Part shown: piece after piece, positions 3,107 through 56,532 of the stretch | How the letters are laid out: each line of letters opens with the position of its first letter | Position numbering within the stretch: position 1 is the stretch's first letter | NCBI RefSeq assembly: GCF_964204645.1 | Contig: NC_134031.1 | Span: 5,208,001-5,272,000 of the forward strand | Length of the DNA: 64,000 nt | DNA from: Tubulanus polymorphus | Lineage: Eukaryota; Animalia; Nemertea | Direction of reading: 5' to 3' | Translations under genes and position numbers: made by a program | Notes under the pieces: generated by a model | Told to the model about the DNA's origin: nothing | Seen by the model: the letters and a program-made list of their open reading frames with translations, nothing else | Database searches by the model: none

Positions 3107-4344
3107 TTAATACTCCCATTTATATTTCTCCGAATTTGTACCGCTGTTAACGGGACCGCTATTATATTGGAATGCACTTCCAAAATCGGTTCGATAATCG
3201 GTTGTAAAATTACTAGACAAACCGCTGTTATAATTCGGCGGCGACGTCGCCGTCGCGGTTGTTGGTGTTATCGTCGAGATTTCTTGCCTCGGGTAGGACA
3301 CGGTGGAGAACACGTTCACTCCTTCCCGAGTTGTAGCTACCGGTGGTGGTGCCTGTTGTTGCTGTTGGGTGGCGTCGGGGTAGTAGGGCGGCGGTGACAT
3401 GGCAGCCGTCTGCTGTTCAAGCCGTTGCCGACGAAGGCGATAGAAACACCAATATCGAAAGCCCATACCGATAAATGCTATCAGAATTGAACCGACTATG
3501 ATCATTACTTTGGTGGTGTTACCTGAAAAATAGATATTATACGCATTCTATATGAAAACATCGCCCCGCCCGAACATCGATTATCATCGCCTGTATTAAT
3601 GTCACAAGGTGCATCTGTAGAGGCTTTGATACATCAAGGGTGTCTTCTCTTCAAATTTCAGTATCTTACCCCTAAACCACCGTCCTATTCCACTCGAGCA
3701 GCCCGCCTCGTCGGAGCCGTCCACGCATTGTTTCGAGCCATCGCACCTATACTTTTTTAGCAGGCAAGACATTTCTTGACTGTCAGAGGACGTGTGGCAC
3801 CATATGGATCCACTTCTCGCTAGAAATTGATAAGATGATTACAGATGATTTCGAGAAGACAAAAACGAATATCTATATACATTGTTATTGTAACGATTTC
3901 TAAGGCCGTAGAAACGGTTACAACTATATATCTTTAAGCATTACATTGATTTTGGCAAGTTTATTTTTAATTGATTATTATCTCATAACTGTTATCTTAT
4001 TTTTGATAGATTTTGATAATTATTTTTAGACAGTGCATTACGTCATCAACATTATGGGTTATACTAGTTGTCGGTGAATTCATTTCAAGCATCGATATAT
4101 TCAAATCCAAAAGAAACTTTATTGATCTGTATTTCTATGTAATTCATATCGTTACTGTCGACAATTTCAAGTAATATGCATTATTTTTCAAGGTGTCAAT
4201 AGACTTTCAAGTTGGTTTTCTTGTTTATTGATAGGAATAGATATCTAGAATCAATACTACATAGGTCTGTATACATATATTATGATAGTAAGATATAGTA
4301 TACATCATCTTCCTACCTTGAGTCGAATTGCCACAGGTTTCCAT
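3107..4344 (-). CDS. Single-pass membrane protein with one LDL-receptor class A (LDLa) domain and cytoplasmic PPxY motifs (LDLRAD-like), 197 aa
   Basis: Exons complement(4317..4344, 3670..3819, 3107..3522), all GT-AG and phase-consistent, 594 nt. Start in strong Kozak context ACCATGG. Translation METCGNSTQARSGSIWCHTSSDSQEMSCLLKKYRCDGSKQCVDGSDEAGC has six Cys and the CDGxxxCxDGSDE LDLa signature. It is followed by a hydrophobic TM (VMIIVGSILIAFIGMGF), a basic stop-transfer (RLRRQR) and a Pro/Thr/Gln-rich tail with PPPY and PPNY. Confidence 0.85.
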
Positions 4345-7225
4345 GGTTCTGAAATCAGAGGAAATGCAATCATAAATCATACGTTCGAAACACAATGGGA
4401 AGATACAGATTATCGTTACCAGTGTGGATTGAGTCAACTAAACAAGAATACAATACGATACCATACGATACAATTCAATACACTATCTCACGATAAAATG
4501 TGTTAAAATGTATCTTTGTACATTGCGTCAGCAGATGTTAATTTATGACACCCGCAGTTCCATATTTAGGAGTAAACCCTCTATGCGCAACCACGGACTC
4601 TAAAACGAGTCTAAACTCTTCATTTTAGATAGAGACCACAGTGAAACTCGACTCAGATGGGAATTTAACGTCCAGTGGTTCAGGAACTGGATCCAGAGTT
4701 CAACGATATAGACGACAAGACAATGGCTCCCAAAAACATTGTTCTGGTGAATCTTACCATCGTTTCTTCCAGTAAGAGGTATATATGTTAAAAATCAGCG
4801 TACATTCTTTTTCTGGATGAAAAAAGAAAATCTTAGATATGTTACGTGCACCATTCTTTTTATGGAGTTTGGTTATATCGGTGATACACAAATCTCGGCT
4901 TATAAACGATGGACGGAATTATCTGTGAAGTCGTTGAATACACGAATAAAAAAGGATGTGTTGTGCGCACCTTCGAGACTCGACTAGGGGTGTGAAACAT
5001 GTACACATTTAGTAGTTCCGTGGATTCTCTAAAAAAGGCCATCGCACACGCACATGCAGGGAAAAGCAGAAACACGGAAACAAACGTTTGTTTGATCTCG
5101 GACACGTTCCCGACGCCGTGTTTCTCGTAAAAGCACACGGCTCAGGGAAACGACCGCAAACGTGTTTCCGTCTCCTGTTTCCGCGTGTCCCTGCGTCGTG
5201 TGCGTTGGACTTCCAAAAATGGATCGCGACTTACCTCACATACGCATGTGTGACAAACAGCAGTAGGAGTTGAAATAAGCATACATACATGAGGTATCAG
5301 TTGATAATGTATACAGTTGTTCTGATACAAACCGTACGCGCTAGCCACACCCAAACACAGCTCTGAATTTTGAGTTCATCCTAGGCGATCAATAAATGTT
5401 TATTCCGAGGACAAACTAACAATAACGTTGATGATTCTCGTTACGATCATAAAATTACGGGTTTCATTTTAATGATTCGTTGAAATGAGATGATTATGCA
5501 ATGTCATCTTTAGGGAGTTTTGCATATTATGTCCATCCTGCATTTTGCTTCGGATGATTCAGTATAAATTTCTGGGGACAGGGAACAATTCTAATTGACG
5601 GACATGGTTTTTAAAAGATAACCACTCGTCTGCCCAGCGGGGCGGTGAGCACGCCTATATCGGTCTACCTCACTCGCTTTGGACGTGGCGCCTCCCGCGT
5701 TCGAAACACAAACTATTTCAATTGGAAATATTTAAAAATATCTATATCGTCAGCTTTTTTGTTTTTCACGAATATCACAAATTCTGGATCGAAAAACAAT
5801 GATATTTCGATTGTATGCACGTGCATTTGCACGTACTGTTGCATGTTTCTGCCCCGGATACCAATAAAAAATTGTCTCGTCTTTTTCAAGGACTTTCGAA
5901 CTTACGTAAGTTTGATTCGTCACAATAAGCGTTTATATATACGTTTTTAGATATGTGTTTAAGATGAATTTTTCTCCATATGCCGGACAACATTTTGAAT
6001 TCGATTTCAATATTTCATGAGCTACGTAGCAGTATTAAGTTGTATGGGTCAAGGGACCTAGATTCTACCTGGATTTTAATCTCGTCTAACCTACGTAATG
6101 CGAGGCGGTTGGAAGATTCGTGCGAGATGAACTGTATATCCACTGTATAACTTGTATAACTGTTATGATTTCTTTCTAGATAAAGATCTGATATAATGAT
6201 AACTGACAAGGATGTTATGAGAAGATTATATACATAATTGAAATATGATATTGTGTCATATCAAAAGTATTCAAAATTGCAAATAAATATATGCGTTCGT
6301 AATTTTGAATACTTTTGATGATCGCCATTTTGAGAATTGACTGGAGTGGAGTCAATGTACTTTAGTGACCTTGTCTGTTCAAGGGTTTGATAAAATAGCG
6401 CCGCGCAATGGATTTTATTGTCGCGAAATTCGTGCAGTTGTATATGGTTGAACTTTTCTTGCACCTTACGCGGTGTAGCGCTTTTAAATGACTACACACA
6501 CCTCAATTCGACGTGTATTTAAGTTCTTTAGAAGTTGCCTATCTATATAGATGACAATCGCTTGGAGTGTCTCCGGGCAGGACAGGGCAGGATACACAAT
6601 ACCCGTGACGCGTGCTAGCGCAGGTTATTTTGCGGGGCGTCGGGGGTTCTTTCGTTTATAGCTTACATTTCTATGATAATCCGAGTCAATAATCGTATTA
6701 TCAGATATATTCTGAGAAAGTTAGCGCTAAAACCCAGTTGCCTGCTAGCTATGAGTTTTCTCTATTCCCTTACAATCAAATTACGTGTTTGTCAACGAAA
6801 CAAAGACAAAACAAGAAACAATCAATAGAAAACAATATATACAAAGCTTTAAAAGGAAAGAAATTGATTACAGGGCATGTCAGTATGTAGTAGGCCTACT
6901 ACTATAGATAAAGAATTTCAAATTGTCAAATCAAAAGCTGATTTGAAATAGCTCCCCATATTCATAAATCTGATTTACTATTCACATCGTTAAAATCTAT
7001 CCATGAAGGGGTCAAACGTAGTGTTTTCCCTGCTACACTTTTAATATTTCGATGAAAAATGCATTCTTCACAATAATTCGTGCATTACTTACAGTTATTT
7101 CTGGCAGACGCCCAAACAGCAAGCAAACGATAAAGATTTGAATGGTGGTTAGTTTCATGATCAGTATCATTGATATCACTATCAGAAAATATTCGAACAC
7201 GGAGCAAGGGGTCAATACCCCCAAA

Positions 7226-9574: not shown

Positions 9575-9844
9575 ATAAAAACCCATTGTATACAGATTAA
9601 AAGTTTTAAAATCAAGGATTAATTCAATCAAAAATTAGAATGATACGACGTTTAGAACTCTCACTAGAGATCATCGATCTTAGATCATCAACAGGTGATG
9701 GTGATCTCTAGTGCGAGTTCGAAACGTCGTCTCATTTTCACTTTTGATTGAATAAATTCTTCATTTTTCTAGACTTTAAAATCTATATATAGTGGCTTTT
9801 AAACTTATTATCTGTTCTCCTCGTGCGAGTGTGGTTATTCAACT
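9575..9844. mobile_element. Inverted pair of Penelope-like terminal repeats with decayed hammerhead motifs and a possible 14-bp TSD
   Basis: Inverted arms span 9577-9800 around GATCTC-TAGTGC-GAGTTC-GAAACGTC. Flanks are AAAATTTTGATATG (9561-9574) and AAAATATTGATATG (9845-9858). Confidence 0.6.
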
Positions 9845-12800: not shown

Positions 12801-13828
12801 GACCTACAACACGATCCGTACGCCGAATAGTAGCGAAGGTATCGTGAACTATAATAGTACATTTAGTAGCGGTCGATATAAATGGTAGAATCGTCCTAAA
12901 AACGTAGATATAAATGAAGCTTTTGGATGAATTTTGCCGGCAGTTAAAATCACGTAAAACTAAGTTTTATGTTTTAAAACGGGGTTTTACTTTGTAGAAT
13001 ACAAGATAAACATATCTAAACATTAGAAATACACTTAAAATGCGCGAAAAATTAATATATATTTTGTTCTCAGTTTTTTTGTTCAAAATTTGTATACTTT
13101 TATTTTGCGCAAGATTTGGTAACTTGTTTTGAAAATATTTCTATAAATTCATTTCTGTTCACGGTCTCGCCCACGTGTACACAACAACGCAAATCTAACC
13201 TACAGTTGAACTAAAATGCGGTATATAACTGTTGCATAGGAACAATGCGTTATGCATTGTGCTATGGTTAAATATGCGGCTGTATTTATGACATGTTCAT
13301 CGCACCATGACTTTGAACCTCCCATTTTAGCAACACGTCACCACTGTCGGTTAAAATTTCTCTTTATCTAATACGGTCATTTGGTCGTCGCCTACAGAGA
13401 GAGGGAGAATAGTTCGTTGGAATATGTACATTATGATAAATATATATATACACGCATTTAACCCGTATGTAAACCATACAGCTGTTATACACAGGTCGTG
13501 GAGCATATTTCCAACGGACTTTCTTTCGCCGACGAACCATTGCGCCGGACACCGTGGTGGACTATAGATTTTCTACGACCAATAGCATGTTACTGCAACT
13601 ATTACACCGAATAGGGGAAGTACAATGCATTCTGTGTCTGGGATATCCTTTCGGTAACGACTACTTTACAAATTGCTTCCATGGAGATACGACGAAGTCC
13701 GCATATGCGGCGAAATCGCATTCAAAGCGTTAAATATTTAATACGTACAGTATGTAAACGACCATGGTCAGTATTAGTTATCGTTATCATATGCATATGC
13801 AAAACTGAGTCGTCCTGGGTCGATATAC

Positions 13829-13830
<2 letters not shown>

Positions 13831-13918
<88 letters not shown>

Positions 13919-13928
13919 GTATATATAT
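13831..13928. repeat. (TA)n microsatellite
   Basis: About 98 bp of TA with few interruptions, about 90 bp upstream of the miRNA cluster. Confidence 0.97.
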
Positions 13929-14020
13929 GTGGATTTGGACTCGCCGACATGTTGTGACCCTAATTATTTGCCAAAACGATATCCATCGTACATGACGTAT
14001 TTAGATAAATGATCGTTGCC

Positions 14021-14098
14021 TTATGTCGAGGGTGAATCCGCTGTTTCTCATGTCATGATGTTCACCCACATGAGACAGTGTGTCCTCCCTCTACGTAA
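14021..14098 (+). ncRNA. mir-1994: pre-miRNA, miR-1994 family copy 1 (mature 3p about 14071-14092, TGAGACAGTGTGTCCTCCCTCT)
   Basis: 5' arm GAGGGTGAATCCGCTGTTTCTCATGT pairs with ACATGAGACAGTGTGTCCTCCCTC. The mature arm matches the recalled lophotrochozoan miR-1994. CNNC (CGTC) lies 18 nt past the mature 3' end. Confidence 0.9.
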
Positions 14099-14202
14099 CG
14101 CGCTGAAAACGTCACTAGCCGGCGGCGTACGAGGAACTTGGAGCAGCGGATGCTCGAAGGATCAATGGGTTCTTGATTTGACGGATTTTTCAGCTTGGTA
14201 TA

Positions 14203-14280
14203 GGTATATTGCGGGGTTGGACTCGCTAGTCTGATGGAAATATCAAGGCCATGAGACAGTGTGTCCTCCCTCGGAATGCC
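14203..14280 (+). ncRNA. mir-1994: pre-miRNA, miR-1994 family copy 2 (mature 3p about 14252-14273, TGAGACAGTGTGTCCTCCCTCG)
   Basis: 5' arm CGGGGTTGGACTCGCTAGTCTGATGG pairs with CCATGAGACAGTGTGTCCTCCCTCG. CNNC (CTGC) lies 17 nt downstream. Confidence 0.9.
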
Positions 14281-14354
14281 ACCTCTAATCTGCCAGCTTT
14301 CCTAGATGGTCGTCAATTCAAAACGGATCGTTTACGCAACAATCTACACATCAG

Positions 14355-14427
14355 TCTATTATTAGGTTGGACCCGCTTGTCTTGTGTTTCGCACTCCATG
14401 AGACAGTGTGTCCTCCCTCGAAATAGA
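14355..14427 (+). ncRNA. mir-1994: pre-miRNA, miR-1994 family copy 3 (mature 3p about 14399-14420, TGAGACAGTGTGTCCTCCCTCG)
   Basis: 5' arm TCTATTATTAGGTTGGACCCGCTTGTCTTGTG pairs with CATGAGACAGTGTGTCCTCCCTCGAAATAGA. There is an apical UGUG motif. Confidence 0.88.
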
Positions 14428-17400
14428 AAATTAGCAACCATTTCGGGAAACCCGTCACGTCACCTCCTGCGTCGTGAATATTACGGACAAGGAAGCAATA
14501 TCGCGACGGACTTGGAGACATTGCGACGGAATATCGCGAGACATTGCGTGGGAATAATTATAGAAGTTAATATTTTGCTTAATTTTGATATCGAATTTCG
14601 TAACAAGTGAAAAAATAAAGAAATTGTTTTTAAGAACTAATGATCTTAACGGTGTTGAGTGAGTGATGTTGAAGTTGTATCCATGGTAATGGGGATTCGA
14701 CCTTCCTTTTGTAGTTCATATAGTATTGTCGTAGAATGGGATGTATTGTCGGGAATACGGCTTTAAATTTGAAAGACTTTAAATACGTTCAAAGACTTCG
14801 TACTACACGGAAACGAGGAGGATATAGCGCTCTTTATTGCTTCTGTTTGCTTTCATTGACGAAACTCGACGATTAAATCGCGATTTCGAATTCTGATAAA
14901 TCGAAACTTTTTCTATTGTGTGGAATTTAATCTGTGGATATGATGACTATCCACGATAGATATTTATCAATAGCTAATTCCCGATATCCCACAATTGAAA
15001 ACTAATAGTTTCCCCCTGGAGTGGTTGTTGGAGCGAGCCGAGAGATGTCGTGGTCTCAATAAACCCTCAATTTCTGAAACTTTAGTCTTCAACGAAATAA
15101 TGTTTGAATAGCTCCTAAATCAATTACTTTGATGATCATCCGCCATTGACTGGACTCGCGATCGAGTATCAAAGCCCGTATTCAAGTGGTTAGGCGGAAA
15201 CAAACTATATGCACATACCCAGCCTGGACGAGTCGAGGAAGCCACAGGACCTCGACTACTCCCGCATTTTATCCCAACGCCTGTCAAACTTGATCTTGTC
15301 AAGGTCATCGGACCTTGATCCTGTCGAGCGTTCGTGACCCAAAACAAAAGGATTAACACAAACAACGGGACAAGATTTCGATCGTAACCCACGAAACGCG
15401 TATATTTTACACGAAATGTACATTGTACAATGTCGATATGTTTTATGAAAATAGACTCACTGTAACGATCGAGAAATAAGACGAATTAGATACAATATAA
15501 TTTATAGCTACTATTTACGTAATCGTTTAGTCCGCCTCCGTATCGCTACGTAGATGGCAGCACTTTACCGAACGAATGGATTGACATACATCGCTAAATA
15601 CAGGCGTCAAATTGTCCATGCATGATTGAGTGACGTCAGCGCCATTAACACAAGAGGTATAACTAGGATAAATACAACGTTTACTCATTGTTTTACTCTA
15701 TACGCACTTTGCAGTTCGAGTTTGAGCACAAGATAAGATACGTACATGTACATGCAGATGTCAACAAATAAGTTACTTCATCTAAATTGAAGTCGTTTTG
15801 AATTTCCCGGTTAAACTGCCCGTTACGGTTTTTAAAAATCACCCTCGCTTGATGCATATGGTTTGGTTACCTCCCTTCGTCGACCTATGTAACGCGTTGG
15901 TGCGAGGAGGCAAAACCCCGGCAAGTGGACATCAAGCCCTGTGTATAGGATAAAGGAGTGGGCGTACACAATACAGGATATGGCCAACTCGGACTTCGAC
16001 TGGACAAAAACGAAATCATTTTTTCTGACTTCCTCGACGTATTTTCCGTCGGACTTCGCTTACCTCGGGACCAATTTTGCCGATACCAGTTTGTCGGAGT
16101 TAGGCGAGGTTTGCTGTATTCCATTTAGTTCTCTATTCATCTTAAAACTGTTATAACGTAACACATGTATATAATACACATGTACGCATAATCGATCAAT
16201 ATTATATAATCTATTATCACAAACGTTGAAGGTGAAATGGACAACGAATTTACGCAACATACATAATGTATCCAACTGAAAGGCGTTGTTTTCTACTAGA
16301 GGCGGTCTTACAGTCGTTTCATTTTTCATTCAAATCGTTACACTCCAGAAGCGTCCTCGGGAATTTGCAGAAATAACAATTTCGAACTCAACTCGGCATG
16401 AACTAGTTTCTCAGTTAAATGTGATCTAACCGCAGTAGTTCATTCCGGGTTGCTCATTCGGGATTTACATACCTCAAAAATCACTTTTAACTGACTGAGA
16501 AAACCCGTCTACCCCGAGTAGGAACTAGGGATAAACCTCGATTTTTTTCTCACAGAATCTGTCCCCTGGACGCTTCCGTATTACACAGTTTGATATTAAG
16601 CGATATGTGTTCAGCGATGACATAGACTTATTGCGTTTTTAAGTTTAAGATAAACGTTATTTGCTTAGTTATCATTCGCCTCTCGCAAGAGGTTTACACC
16701 ACCGGAAATCTATAGCGCGGCAATATCTCGCAAAGGCGATTAAAAAAAAACCTATAAGAGCATTCGAAAAGACTTGACTGAAATGCAGCCATTCTTGTTA
16801 TTCATTATCTCAAATACTTTCAAGTAGATAATCCGGATAATTTGCGTCGCCCCGGCCGATTGCACTAATCAAATAAACGATACATGTGTCCATACTTCTT
16901 TTCACCGGTTATTTAAGTCTATAACCGTCAGAATTGGTCATCGCCAGATCTAGAAATTTGAGGTCTGACAAAGGTCAACATCATTCTAATTCCGAGAATT
17001 CGTACATTCTTCACATGAGATATCGACTTTATAGTAATAAATGACTGACTGAAATATTCATATCTCGGGGATAAATTCGTCTGCATGTGTTTGTTTGATT
17101 ATATCACTGGGCGTATGTACAAATAGAAAATGATCCGCGGCGGAAAGTATGTTTGGAATATAATCAGAATATGAGTGGATTCCTCGATTCGATATATGAT
17201 GCTATCTATAAAATCCGAGTCTATCTCTAGCTGATGAGAAAACAAAAAAAAAAATGTTTCCCGATGAAAATCTCGAAATGCTATTTTTAAAACGAATTTT
17301 CTTACGATAGTGTGCCATCATCATTGGAATTTCTGATTATCTTACACGAAACGATCCGATCATTGATAAAACCAGTTCCAATCAGGAACTGTTTTTTTTT

Positions 17401-19234: not shown

Positions 19235-22200
19235 TCATTTTTTATGTTTTTCGTTCATAATTCCATCATTGTCCGACACGTCGTACAAAACGACTTCCAT
19301 TTCGTCGGGTTTTCGTTCGTCGCTCTTCCAGATTCCGTAGCCGAAGTAAATCAGGAAACCTGACGAGAAAGAAATAAGAAAAATAAATGCCGGTTATAGC
19401 TGATTATAGTTTCGCAACTAGACTCAATTCAAATAACTACAGTAAAAACCTCGCCTTACTCGGACATGGCCAACTCACACCAACATAAATACAAGATACA
19501 TAAATGACAAAAATAAAATCAATTTCTGACCTCCTAACGTATTTTCCTATCGTTGACAAGGACCTCACTTAAACCCCGGACCGATTTTGCCGGCCTCAGT
19601 TTGTCCGAGTAAGGTGAGGTAGATATTGTACTATATGACATTACCGAAAAACATCCACACGGCGAATCGTATCCAAGTTGCGCTGGATAAAGATAACATC
19701 AAGTAGAGATCGACGATCAGCGACGCCAGGGGCAGAACTGGTACGAAGGGAACTTTGAATATCAAGCGGGCTCTATTCTTCGGCTGCCTAGCGATATAGG
19801 CGATTATGCCGAGCACGGCGGCTATGAAGAGTACGGCCAGTAAAATAGCCCACCACCTCGCTTCCTGTAAATACTGCGTTCCGTATAGAGACAGGGACGT
19901 CAGCGCCAAAGCGACGACAGTTATAGCTGCTAAACTAAGTAACACACGGTGTCTGGATTTTTCCGTCGGCTCGTCTACCCCGTCTCCGACGTGGAATAAA
20001 CTCGTCAGACTGTTGACGCTCTGTTCGCTTCCTATTCTCTGGTAAGTCGATCCGATCGGCGCGTCCTCCTGGTCGGTGTAGTCGATCGAACGTTCTCGAA
20101 TCTCTTCGGCCACGACCTCTTTGTTCCGTTCGCCGTTCGTCTGGCCGTTCGGCCCGTCTTGGCTATCGCCTGTCGGCAAACGTCGGAATACGCTCGTCTG
20201 CGTGCTGGGTACGTATTTAACCACGTTGATCTTATCCCCGACTCGTAGAAGGCCCGTACTTTCGCCATTTGCTCCTTGTTGCTGTTGAGTCGTTGCCGCA
20301 GTCGAGTCGGTCGCCAACGAACTGTCGCCTAGATCGCTGCGGATCTCGTCCTGAGTCTTGATGACGTCTTTATTCAAGCCGACATCGGTCGGCTGATAGC
20401 GCAGGATCAGTACGCTGACTGCCACGACGGTGTAAGCCATCAGCGTGCCTATCGACATCATCTCGATCAAACTTTGCAATTCCAGAAGAGTAGCCAACAA
20501 AGCCGCCAGAAAACCAGCTACGAGCGTTGCGATGAAAGGCGTACTCGTAGTCGGGTTCACGTAAGCCAAAAAACGAAATACCAAACCATCTTTAGCCATA
20601 GAGTAGATAATCCTCGGTAGAGGGAAAATTGAACCCATCATGGCCGCTACTAAGCCGCACATACCGCCGATAGCGATCACGTATTCGGCTCCGAAGACTC
20701 CCGTCTGGGCGAAAACCTTTGGCAAAGGCGCCGTTGATGACAACTCGAAGTAGGGGATCATCAGCGTTATGACGGCCGATACGCCGAAATATGCGACGAA
20801 ACAGATGACAAGAGTAGCTAATATTGCTAGCGGGATGTTTTTGCTCGGCTCCTTCGCCTCTTCTCCGGAGGTGGCGATGGTGTCGAAACCGACGAAGGCG
20901 TAGAAGCAAGTAGCAGCACCGGACATCACCTATAACAGTAAGCGTGCAGATCATTAAATCTATTTGTTCATTTAATCAGTTATTTTTCGTCGAGTTCTGC
21001 CAAGCATTGTGCATTAATAACAAAAACATGTGAGACTCATGGTAAAGCCACTCATTACCTACATAATCAATGTTAAGTAAAGATGTCCACTAAGACCAGA
21101 GGCCGGTTTTATGGACTGGTACAATCTTCAACTCAGGGGTTAACTCAATTCAATTTCTCCCCGGTTAAAGTTTTACATCAGTCTTTAAAACTGGTGTCAG
21201 TGATACAGTTTTTAACCATTTCCGACATTAGACTATATATAACACTTACGCCTCTGAAACCGAATGGGAAAAATCCCGGTGGACTTGTCCAGTTTTCACC
21301 GTGCACGTGGAACAGCCCGATACATATGATGCACCCGATAACGATGACGTTGATGAATGTACAGATGAAATTGAACAGCGATGACATCTACAAAAAGAAA
21401 GAAATAAAGCGTTTTGATCAAAATTAACTTTTTCAACAAAACAACTACAACATCTTTGACTAATCTCCACGCAATCTTGCTAAGCTCTAATCGCAAAATC
21501 AACTATTTTATTCCCCTCATTGAGGTTTGACGAAAACTCATGTTTGTTTGGTCGTTCACTACATGCAATAGGACTTTCATTTTGAAAACCCCTTATTCAA
21601 TGTCACCATGTCAGGAAGCAACTAGATTTCAAGGTTTCCAAATGATGACTTAATACATTCTTCATTTCGCAGAGAATTATCCTACATCACGCAGGGAGAA
21701 CGCTGAAAATCGACGACGACGTTAATTTTTCTGCATGAGGTTGGTTACCAAATTGATGTTCACTCTGCCGGCATATTCGTGCGCGATAATGCATTTTGCC
21801 GTTGTCGAATATCGTCAAATCGACGAACAAACGAAGCGCCAAATTCATGCAGCAATTAACGACTGTAAAATCCAATAATGCTGCGGTTGTTTTTTATGCA
21901 GACGAAAATTGATTGCGAATAATGTAGAGGTGTGTGTGTGTGTGTGAGGGAGAACTCCGTATTGATTCCTTTGGCTTCGAAACGGGTCAGGTCGTCTGAT
22001 TGTGAATTCGACCTTCAAATCATTATGCATCTTTGACATTCAAAACTTCTTGAGCTATTTCCTCAGCCAATGCGCTCGAAAGCAACAAGGGAGATTGCTC
22101 GGGGAATTGAAGGTCTTTTATTAGACTATTTTTGATGGAGAAGATCTTAAAAAGAAAACCTAATCATTTCTGTACAACCACGATTAAGAAAAGAACAATT

Positions 22201-45653: not shown

Positions 45654-48105
45654 ATAATGGATAGCACATGATCGTGGTGATAAAAATCAAACAGCTTTTA
45701 CATATATCGTATGACTTTTCAAGCCTGGGATTTTTTTTAAATATATATACATATATACATCGAGACTGTGAATATTATTCCGTATATTATATGCATCGGT
45801 TCGCGGGATGATTTGCTTAACACCCGCCTCTCGTCCATCGAATCGCATTCTCTCTCGCCCGCGATGAGCCTAAATATTTGATGAGTTGACACGTATCTCG
45901 CGAGCGGCGCCCGACGCCGAAAACGATATATCTAACTAATACATTTCTATACTGAACATGTCACAAAACCGATATATTTATATTCGTTCGAGACGAACTT
46001 CGACAGAGTAACTTTACATCGTAGACAAGGCGTGAATGAATCAAATTCCGACAGACGAATCATCGGCGCTATTTGGACTATGAATCCGCGATGTTACCGA
46101 TAAAGGTCGACCGCCGATCACGCAACTATATCTGTACTTCGATTTCCGATTTCAAAATCAAACCCCCTGTTTTGCTCCCGGAAGGTGTGGTGGGTCTGTA
46201 AGGGACACTCAATCAGAAAATCAAAACGAAATTTACCAACCTAATTCCTAATTCCTCGCATAATCTATTGCTACAATGATTGATTGTTATTATATCATAT
46301 TTTCATACTGTATCGTATTGCATAATTACATATCTTTGTATCAATCTATTATGCAAAATAAACTTAACTTAACAGGGACAATCCCTATTTTAAGATAAAA
46401 AAGTACGTCAATGATGTTAAGTTATTTTAGGACGCTTTCCTGACGGCTGTTATCATAAGCTGATATAACGCGCGTTTATTTTTCGTGACAGCGAAGCCTT
46501 ATAAGTGTTTTCTTCCTGCACCGGAGATTAAACGGGATATCGCGTTCGCCGGTCAAACATCCGGGTCGCGGCGTATCGAAGATAGTGGCAAGTAGCACAA
46601 GAATCCAGTGTCGCCTCAGATCATGGATGTATGAATCTAGATTTATAATCTGAATTTATACGTCCATGCTCGGATAGACTTTGTCTTCCCGCTTGCCTCG
46701 GTCCTCATTTTGTCAACTATTATTCACCTGTCTCATTAATCTCATCAGTCCCAATTGCATGATCGAATGATTATTTGAAACGCGACAACGTTGATCGTTT
46801 CCGATAGAGCTAGTAGCATATTTTTCTTGACTAATCGTTTTAGAATCCATAATATTGATGACTATGAATATTAATTCTACGTATATTGCGTGTTCACGCT
46901 TCGAAAGCCGTGAGCATACGAGCGTTTTTTTGACCAGGTTCGAATTAGGCGTATGATAGATTAGTCCCGAGCAAACCGTTCACACTGGTGCCAATGGGTC
47001 CATCCATGCCTGGTTGACAAATTTTAGCACGGGTCAAATTATCCCGGTTGAATGCTAACTGGTTCTAGAAGTGACTCACCTCGCTTTTGCTACTTCGTCG
47101 TTTTGATGGCACCAAGGGAGTGATTTACTTGTGAACGCGCTCTCGAATTAGGCACGGGCCATACTCTGATCTGGTCGGGGCCAGATTGACCCGGGCCAAA
47201 TCGTCACCGTGTGAAGGTGATAGGTTTTTGTATTTTGATACCTAAAGTCTTTCTTATTTCGCGATAGTCGAATGCAATCAGTTCACAAGGGAATACGAAA
47301 AAATACTTAACCCAATATTCCGATAGGGATTGATGGTATCCGTAGTAAAGTGACAGTTTGTAATCATTAAAATTAGTAGTGACGTTTCAATTCTATTCTA
47401 TGAGGCATCTTCAAAACTCAAGGCTCGTAGTTACTCGAAACCCACTACTCTCTAATTTTTCTTCGTAATTGTGGGTTTTTCTTCAAGATAAACATTGATA
47501 GATGCGACGGCTTGAGCAGACGAACGAACGAACGGATGTTGTTATCGGAAAATACGACGAATTCGACTTAATTACGTCGCTACTTCCGACGGTAAATTGA
47601 CGCTGCGTTTTAGACACTATGAAGATAGAGCGAGAGGAAGATCTCAGAATGCGGAATAAATCCGTCTGCGGTTAGATTAGCAACGCTGATATATCACGTG
47701 ATATCGTTAGCGCCGTAGCGACTAAAAAACCGGAGGCGGTTTCTTTAGATGTAGAATATAATCCGCATTCGTATCTACTTCCGGGGAGTGCGTCGGCGCT
47801 ACTGGTGTCTAAAATACTTGAACTTTTTTAACGGTGGATTTTTATTCCGGCCTCGATTCAAACCAGTGGGGGCTAGTTCCTGGTCGCATAGGTGGTAAAT
47901 GCCATTCCAAACCAAACTGATAAAACTGGACCAACTTCTAAAGTTGTATAGGTTGAATCTGAAGGAGTTGTGAGTTTCGGATTAGTTCATTTCAAATCGG
48001 TAATTCTTGTCGAACTAGAACCGCGGATAATATCAACCCGTCGAGTCAGTAAAATACTGATAGCATTTTAAAATCGACCAACATTTCAAATCTAGATTCA
48101 AACGT

Positions 48106-56410: not shown

Positions 56411-56532
56411 CACAGGGGCCTGACACAAAAAGTTTTTGACCCTGAGTATCCTAGGTACTATATATAAAAAGTCTTTTAATATACTGTACCTTGGATACTG
56501 GGGTCAAAAACCTTTTGTGTCAGGCCCCTGTG
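56411..56532. mobile_element. Near-perfect 122-bp fold-back MITE in the probable TBC1D13 3' UTR
   Basis: CACAGGGGCCTGACACAAAAAGTTTTTGACCCTGAGTATCC ... GGATACTGGGGTCAAAAACCTTTTGTGTCAGGCCCCTGTG. Confidence 0.8.

Follow-up and report, generated by a model that had tools for sequence, protein, structure and literature searches.

Results and Discussion

Three hairpins with a common 3' arm

The stretch of Tubulanus polymorphus DNA analysed here, referred to below as the window, is 64 kb long and corresponds to C7:5208001-5272000 in the genome. It carries three mir-1994 hairpins, all on the + strand and inside 409 nt: copy 1 at 14020-14100 (81 nt), copy 2 at 14205-14281 (77 nt) and copy 3 at 14355-14428 (74 nt). 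The hairpins are separated by two spacers, at 14101-14204 (104 nt) and 14282-14354 (73 nt), which cannot be aligned with each other and are both unique sequence. These limits are the extents given by R1, a covariance model built in this analysis from 13 hairpins (the three of the window and ten found in metagenome contigs), and they replace the 73-78 nt that a first-pass annotation of the sequence had assigned to the hairpins, the R1 lengths being 74-81 nt. The other half of that description, according to which a repeated block forms the 3' arm of each hairpin, has been upheld by the folds (z -4.1 to -5.1).

The block in question is 23 nt long, CATGAGACAGTGTGTCCTCCCTC, and occurs on the + strand of the window at 14069-14091, 14250-14272 and 14397-14419. 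No matches are expected by chance (100 shuffles), and no further match was found in the window even with 3 mismatches allowed. The exact search thus returned the same three copies, mature starts (14071, 14252 and 14399) and spacings (181 and 147 nt) that had been annotated originally. The predicted mature 3p arms extend over 14071-14092, 14252-14273 and 14399-14420, and the inferred 5p (star) arms over approximately 14029-14052, 14214-14236 and 14364-14386 in copies 1, 2 and 3, respectively. The predicted 22-nt mature sequence of copies 2 and 3 is UGAGACAGUGUGUCCUCCCUCG; the sole difference among the three predicted guides is the last nucleotide of copy 1 (...CCCUCU vs ...CCCUCG). The seed of the predicted guide, GAGACAG, is identical to the published miR-1994 seeds.

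In the minimum free energy (MFE) structures, each block forms the 3' arm of a single unbranched hairpin with a stem of 25-36 bp. Copy 1 folds with an MFE of -33.8 kcal/mol (z -5.1) and comprises 36 base pairs, about 12 of which belong to the basal stem. Copy 2 reaches -38.4 kcal/mol on the + strand vs -26.4 on the - strand (z -4.1). Copy 3 is the weakest fold (z -4.5); it reaches -27.1 kcal/mol on the + strand vs -22.6 on the opposite one, and its basal stem, beneath a 3x3 internal loop, is just 6 bp long. Folding had been named in the first-pass annotation as a check on its proposal; all three hairpins do fold, and none of the 200 shuffles folds as well. In the spacers and the downstream flank, on the other hand, structure is not significant (z -0.7, +1.0 and -1.2 for spacer 1, spacer 2 and the flank), so that it is confined to the three units that bear the repeat.

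The R1 model exhibits a clear strand preference, with 57-75 bits on the + strand (57.5, 70.4 and 74.7 bits for copies 1, 2 and 3) vs 16-22 bits on the - strand. The + strand is predicted to be the functional one, since it receives the higher R1 scores and since copies 2 and 3 fold better on it. Two kinds of sequence motifs associated with the hairpins had been reported earlier and were both recovered. CNNC motifs, noted 15-18 nt downstream, start at +18 (copy 1), +17 (copy 2) and +15 (copy 3) after the predicted 3p end, and an apical UGU/UGUG, read from the sequence, is present in copies 1 and 3 and absent from copy 2.

Membership in the MIR-1994 family

Records of the MIR-1994 family are available in miRBase (lgi-miR-1994a/b and cte-miR-1994), in Rfam (RF03386) and in MirGeneDB (Mir-1994). 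At default thresholds, the Rfam search reported nothing in the 64-kb window. With reporting by E-value, RF03386 matches all three hairpins over its full length (positions 1-66 of 66), at 14025-14095 (copy 1, 33.5 bits), 14210-14276 (copy 2, 37.5 bits) and 14360-14423 (copy 3, 40.3 bits), all on the + strand. The E-values are 2e-6 to 1e-4 if a region of 1.3 kb is searched and 7e-3 to 1e-4 for the whole 64-kb window, in which the three hairpins are the best matches to this model. The scores of 33.5-40.3 bits are under the curated gathering cut-off of 47 bits, which is likewise missed by 9 of the 10 foreign hairpins with a perfect mature arm. It thus appears to be too strict for the real spread of the family, and sub-threshold scores need not speak against membership of the Tubulanus hairpins.

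Comparison with published mature sequences leads to the same assignment. The mature sequence published as lgi/bgl-miR-1994a (ugagacaguguguccucccuug) agrees with the predicted one in 21 of 22 positions for copies 2 and 3 and in 20 of 22 for copy 1; PMC7328434 lists bgl-miR-1994a-3p and lgi-miR-1994a as one and the same RNA. Papers on Haliotis, Tegillarca and Biomphalaria also give this 19-mer in print, and the MirMachine paper refers to MIR-1994 as 'the lophotrochozoan family'. The name miR-1994, which the first-pass annotation had given, is thus right, as judged from the full-length RF03386 matches and the agreement of up to 21/22 nucleotides with lgi/bgl-miR-1994a. The Tubulanus genes resemble the known members in their seed, in 20-21 of the 22 mature nucleotides, in the 3p location of the mature arm, in the hairpin architecture and in having a lophotrochozoan host. 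They differ from the molluscan ones in that the paralogues a and b of molluscs diverge within the mature sequence, whereas the three copies described here are identical except for the last base of copy 1.

The sole nemertean included in MirGeneDB 3.0 is Lineus longissimus, and Tubulanus polymorphus is absent from it; no papers linking Tubulanus with miRNA were found in the literature searched. The locus adds a clean annotation of three mir-1994 genes to a phylum for which hardly any microRNAs have been curated.

Divergence of the copies and covariation in the stem

The three copies have diverged to a very different extent in their different parts. The 23-nt block is invariant in all positions (23/23 bases). 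Between the 5p arms of copies 2 and 3 the similarity is 69%, and between that of copy 1 and either of them it is 56%, compared with a mean of 46% for shuffled sequences. The loops, spacers and flanks are unalignable, in agreement with the original description of the loops and spacers as unrelated. The 5' arms had been characterized as different from each other and still pairing; this holds, but they are diverged homologues rather than unrelated sequences, as follows from their similarity of 56-69% vs 46% in shuffles. The differences between them mostly preserve pairing and consist of switches between A-U and G-U or between G-C and G-U.

For the pair counts, the 13 hairpins were realigned to R1. 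In this structural alignment, which is itself fitted to the R1 structure, pairing cells amount to 79.7% vs 73.2% in shuffles and the covariation score is 0.279 vs 0.161, and in both cases none of the 500 shuffles reaches the observed value. In the basal stem, all 6 of the 6 pairs have changes on both sides among the 13 hairpins, and if the register is slid, pairing reaches at most 58%. The ten foreign hairpins were chosen by an exact 20-mer, and the invariance of their 3p arms is therefore by construction. RNAalifold applied to a plain MAFFT alignment produced a meaningless structure of 6 pairs in the invariant arm, because indels had misaligned the 5' arms, and the covariance-model alignment was used instead.

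An invariant 3p arm, together with diverged 5p arms, unalignable loops and flanks and a covarying basal stem, indicates that purifying selection has acted on the mature arm for a long time, and the selection on the 3p arm postulated in the first-pass annotation is supported by this conservation pattern. By the same comparison, the copies can be regarded as old duplicates, in which everything but the stem has diverged past alignment. The conservation profile is the usual one of a microRNA gene, observed here among old paralogues.

Copy number and genomic neighbourhood

The entire genome (268 Mb, 77 contigs) was searched for additional mir-1994 loci with a sequence pattern (up to 2 mismatches), which is able to catch an arm of the miR-1994b type too, with the Rfam model and with R1. 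No loci other than those in the window were found by any of the three methods. As each of them returns just three loci, the triplet is the entire mir-1994 complement of this genome and not part of a dispersed repeat.

Only two exons recognizable by Pfam are present within 21 kb, both on the - strand and flanking the cluster. One, at 3605-3838, is an isolated exon of the LDL-receptor class A type (Pfam, 1e-6); the other, at 19631-20929, is the large last exon of a cationic amino-acid transporter of the SLC7/CAT type (AA_permease_2, 2e-23; AA_permease_C, 6e-15). No host gene was found on the + strand: among the 97 open frames with 55 codons or more between 1 and 19.2 kb, the sole Pfam match is the LDL-receptor class A exon on the - strand. 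The locus seems to be intergenic, unless a gene of the - strand extends across it in antisense orientation, and its primary transcript is probably a separate, non-coding one.

Between 12314 and 14613, the + strand is free of AATAAA and ATTAAA, and hence neither is present within or between the hairpins. The first + strand AATAAA past the cluster, at 14614-14619, follows the 3p end of copy 3 at a distance of 194 nt. This hexamer is a possible poly(A) signal for the primary transcript, and its spacing would fit a single short transcription unit. No promoter has been identified for the cluster; the scan that was run for bacterial promoters and terminators is uninformative in an animal genome.

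Several other elements were noted in the window. A long (AT)n microsatellite at 13823-13936, which precedes hairpin 1 by about 85 nt, gives rise to spurious hairpin and Rfam hits (mir-297, pestivirus UTR). Right after it, a 17-mer at 13928-13944 agrees with the 5p arm of copy 2 in 14 of 17 bases. No fold was found in the 90 nt around this 17-mer (z +1.7), which owes its similarity either to chance or to descent from a fourth copy, now dead. The segment 14492-14556, shortly past copy 3, contains short interleaved direct repeats, GAGACATTGCG... occurring twice at a spacing of 23 nt and ...AATATCGCGA twice at a spacing of 33 nt. The region 14436-14575 was considered as a fourth hairpin and rejected (z -1.2); this stretch is unique in the genome. 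A near-perfect hairpin of 35 bp at 9640-9740 (-52 kcal/mol, z -8.8), with weak Rfam hits to plant miRNAs, has also been rejected as a member of the cluster. It belongs to a probably MITE-like family of palindromic foldback repeats, of which dozens of copies, with identities of 72-81%, are dispersed over the genome. Finally, a weak Rfam match to mir-3121 at 56428-56515 on the + strand (31.4 bits vs the cut-off of 108 bits, E 0.003) is probably due to chance or low complexity.

A probable single transcript and its alternatives

It is likely that the three tandem hairpins of the same strand are genes of the conserved lophotrochozoan MIR-1994 family that would share one transcript and one guide and could together act on its dosage; the polycistronic dosage cluster proposed in the first-pass annotation is a reasonable prediction in this respect. 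According to this model, Pol II would most likely transcribe one short non-coding RNA of the + strand across 14.0-14.4 kb, in the gap between the two - strand genes. Drosha/DGCR8 would then cut each hairpin about 11 bp above the basal junction, with the CNNC motifs helping, and Dicer would take off the loops, whereupon Argonaute would take up the 3p arm common to all three. The loaded guide would be expected to repress mRNAs with sites of the CUGUCUC type. The presence of three hairpins could provide more of one 22-nt guide, or a more robust supply of it. We infer the processing, the co-transcription and the dosage effect, as all steps beyond the anatomy of the DNA, from established microRNA biogenesis.

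Polycistronic clusters of the same family are known in other animals and include mir-2 and mir-310-313 of Drosophila, mir-35-41 of C. elegans and mir-430 of zebrafish. They are similar to the Tubulanus triplet in exhibiting one seed, one strand and short spacing, with a presumed common transcript by which the dose is raised or buffered. The array described here is, however, much smaller than these clusters.

It could be argued that the hairpins are genuine mir-1994 genes with their own promoters or differing regulation, in which case the triplication would serve differential expression and not dosage. The spacers between the hairpins are indeed unique sequence, but with 104 and 73 nt they are so short that little room is left for independent Pol II promoters. 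Moreover, all copies are on the same strand, no poly(A) signal is present between them, and animal microRNAs clustered within less than 1 kb of each other generally share a transcript. We consider this arrangement unlikely.

A second possibility is that one or two of the copies are functional and the remainder, most likely copy 1 or copy 3, is decaying and unprocessed. Copy 1 scores lowest in both models (Rfam, 33.5 bits; R1, 57.5 bits), copy 3 combines the weakest fold with the short basal stem, and the possible dead 5p fragment at 13928-13944 hints at a turnover of copies. However, in spite of loops and flanks in which change has reached saturation, all copies have retained the same mature arm (23/23), which a dead copy of such an age should have lost. 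All three copies have also kept stems of 25-36 bp, z-scores of -4.1 or lower and a CNNC motif at +15 to +18. The decay of any of them is thus regarded as very unlikely.

That the repeats are something other than microRNA genes, i.e. a coding repeat, a transposon or foldback family or a CRISPR-like array, is extremely improbable. An ORF of 119 amino acids at 14251-14610 does start at the ATG of copy 2 and holds copy 3 in frame (147 = 3 x 49), but copy 1 is out of frame, 181 being no multiple of 3, and this ORF has been rejected as a gene, with no Pfam match, no record in assemblies and no transcript-derived record in a look-up. A transposon is at odds with the 19-mer being found just three times in 268 Mb, as opposed to the dozens of copies of the foldback at 9640-9740. 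The likeness to a mini CRISPR array, to which the first-pass annotation had drawn attention, is beside the point in a 268-Mb animal genome, the 23-nt repeats being only three in number and their gaps unequal (158 and 124 nt). Besides, the hairpin alone is common to other organisms, as expected of a microRNA.

Tandem mir-1994 genes in other organisms

The interpretation of the triplet as a cluster of mir-1994 genes is in line with the arrangement of the family elsewhere. In the snail Biomphalaria glabrata, bgl-miR-1994b and bgl-miR-1994a are encoded about 640 nt apart, at KE711897:46379-46444 and 47019-47082; both are classed as intergenic, with 3p reads for each of them (PMC12261956). Like the Tubulanus genes, those of the snail are tandem and less than 1 kb apart; they are intergenic, as the Tubulanus cluster seems to be, and their 3p arm is the dominant one, as predicted for Tubulanus. 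The two genes of the snail, about 640 nt apart, have diverged mature arms, whereas the three Tubulanus genes share one mature arm and are packed into 409 nt.

Metagenome data provide further examples, from other marine animals. The 20-mer was found in seven contigs, in all of which (7/7) it constitutes the 3' arm of a mir-1994 hairpin, as judged from the Rfam scores (36.7-48.9 bits) and from folding. Tandem pairs are present in 4 of the 7. Three of these contigs contain two copies with the exact arm, 363-672 nt apart, and the fourth pair, on contig L011, includes a diverged paralogue at 7021-7102 on the + strand, 1.4 kb upstream of the canonical hairpin. The 3p arm of this paralogue is CAUGAGACAGUUAGUCCUCCCG, with the seed kept and the centre changed; it scores 24.6 bits with R1 and its fold has a z-score of just -1.4. 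No microsynteny with the metagenome contigs was detected at the level of coding exons or flanks, the hairpin alone being common to them and the window.

The tandem layout of mir-1994 is thus already known, and what is specific to Tubulanus is the presence of three copies in 409 nt with the same mature arm. The snail and metagenome pairs suggest that tandem MIR-1994 genes are old and widespread in lophotrochozoans, which is a small point for the evolution of microRNA families and for the phylogenetic use of microRNA complements. Known microRNA biology is left unchanged by the cluster, which is convincing but ordinary.

Amplification of mir-1992 in the same genome

The spiralian-specific family mir-1992 is represented in the same genome by six hairpins, with RF04081 scores of 37-66 bits that are below the cut-off of 70 bits. 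Two of them form a pair at C1:25379119-25379418, 277 nt apart, and the other four an array within 0.9 kb at C7:4272949-4273862. The placement of the organism in Lophotrochozoa, proposed in the first-pass annotation on account of miR-1994, is supported by these six hairpins independently of that family, at the level of Lophotrochozoa/Spiralia. The mollusc-type miR-1985 was not found in the genome at up to 3 mismatches.

The arrays of two and four mir-1992 hairpins resemble the mir-1994 triplet in that a conserved family has likewise been amplified in tandem. There is a slim chance that the triplet is a case of tandem amplification of deeply conserved microRNA families across the lineage and that the diverged 5p arms are loaded as distinct guides; if so, the array would deliver one conserved and three lineage-specific guides from a single transcript. 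On contig C7, the mir-1992 array precedes the mir-1994 cluster by about 0.95 Mb.
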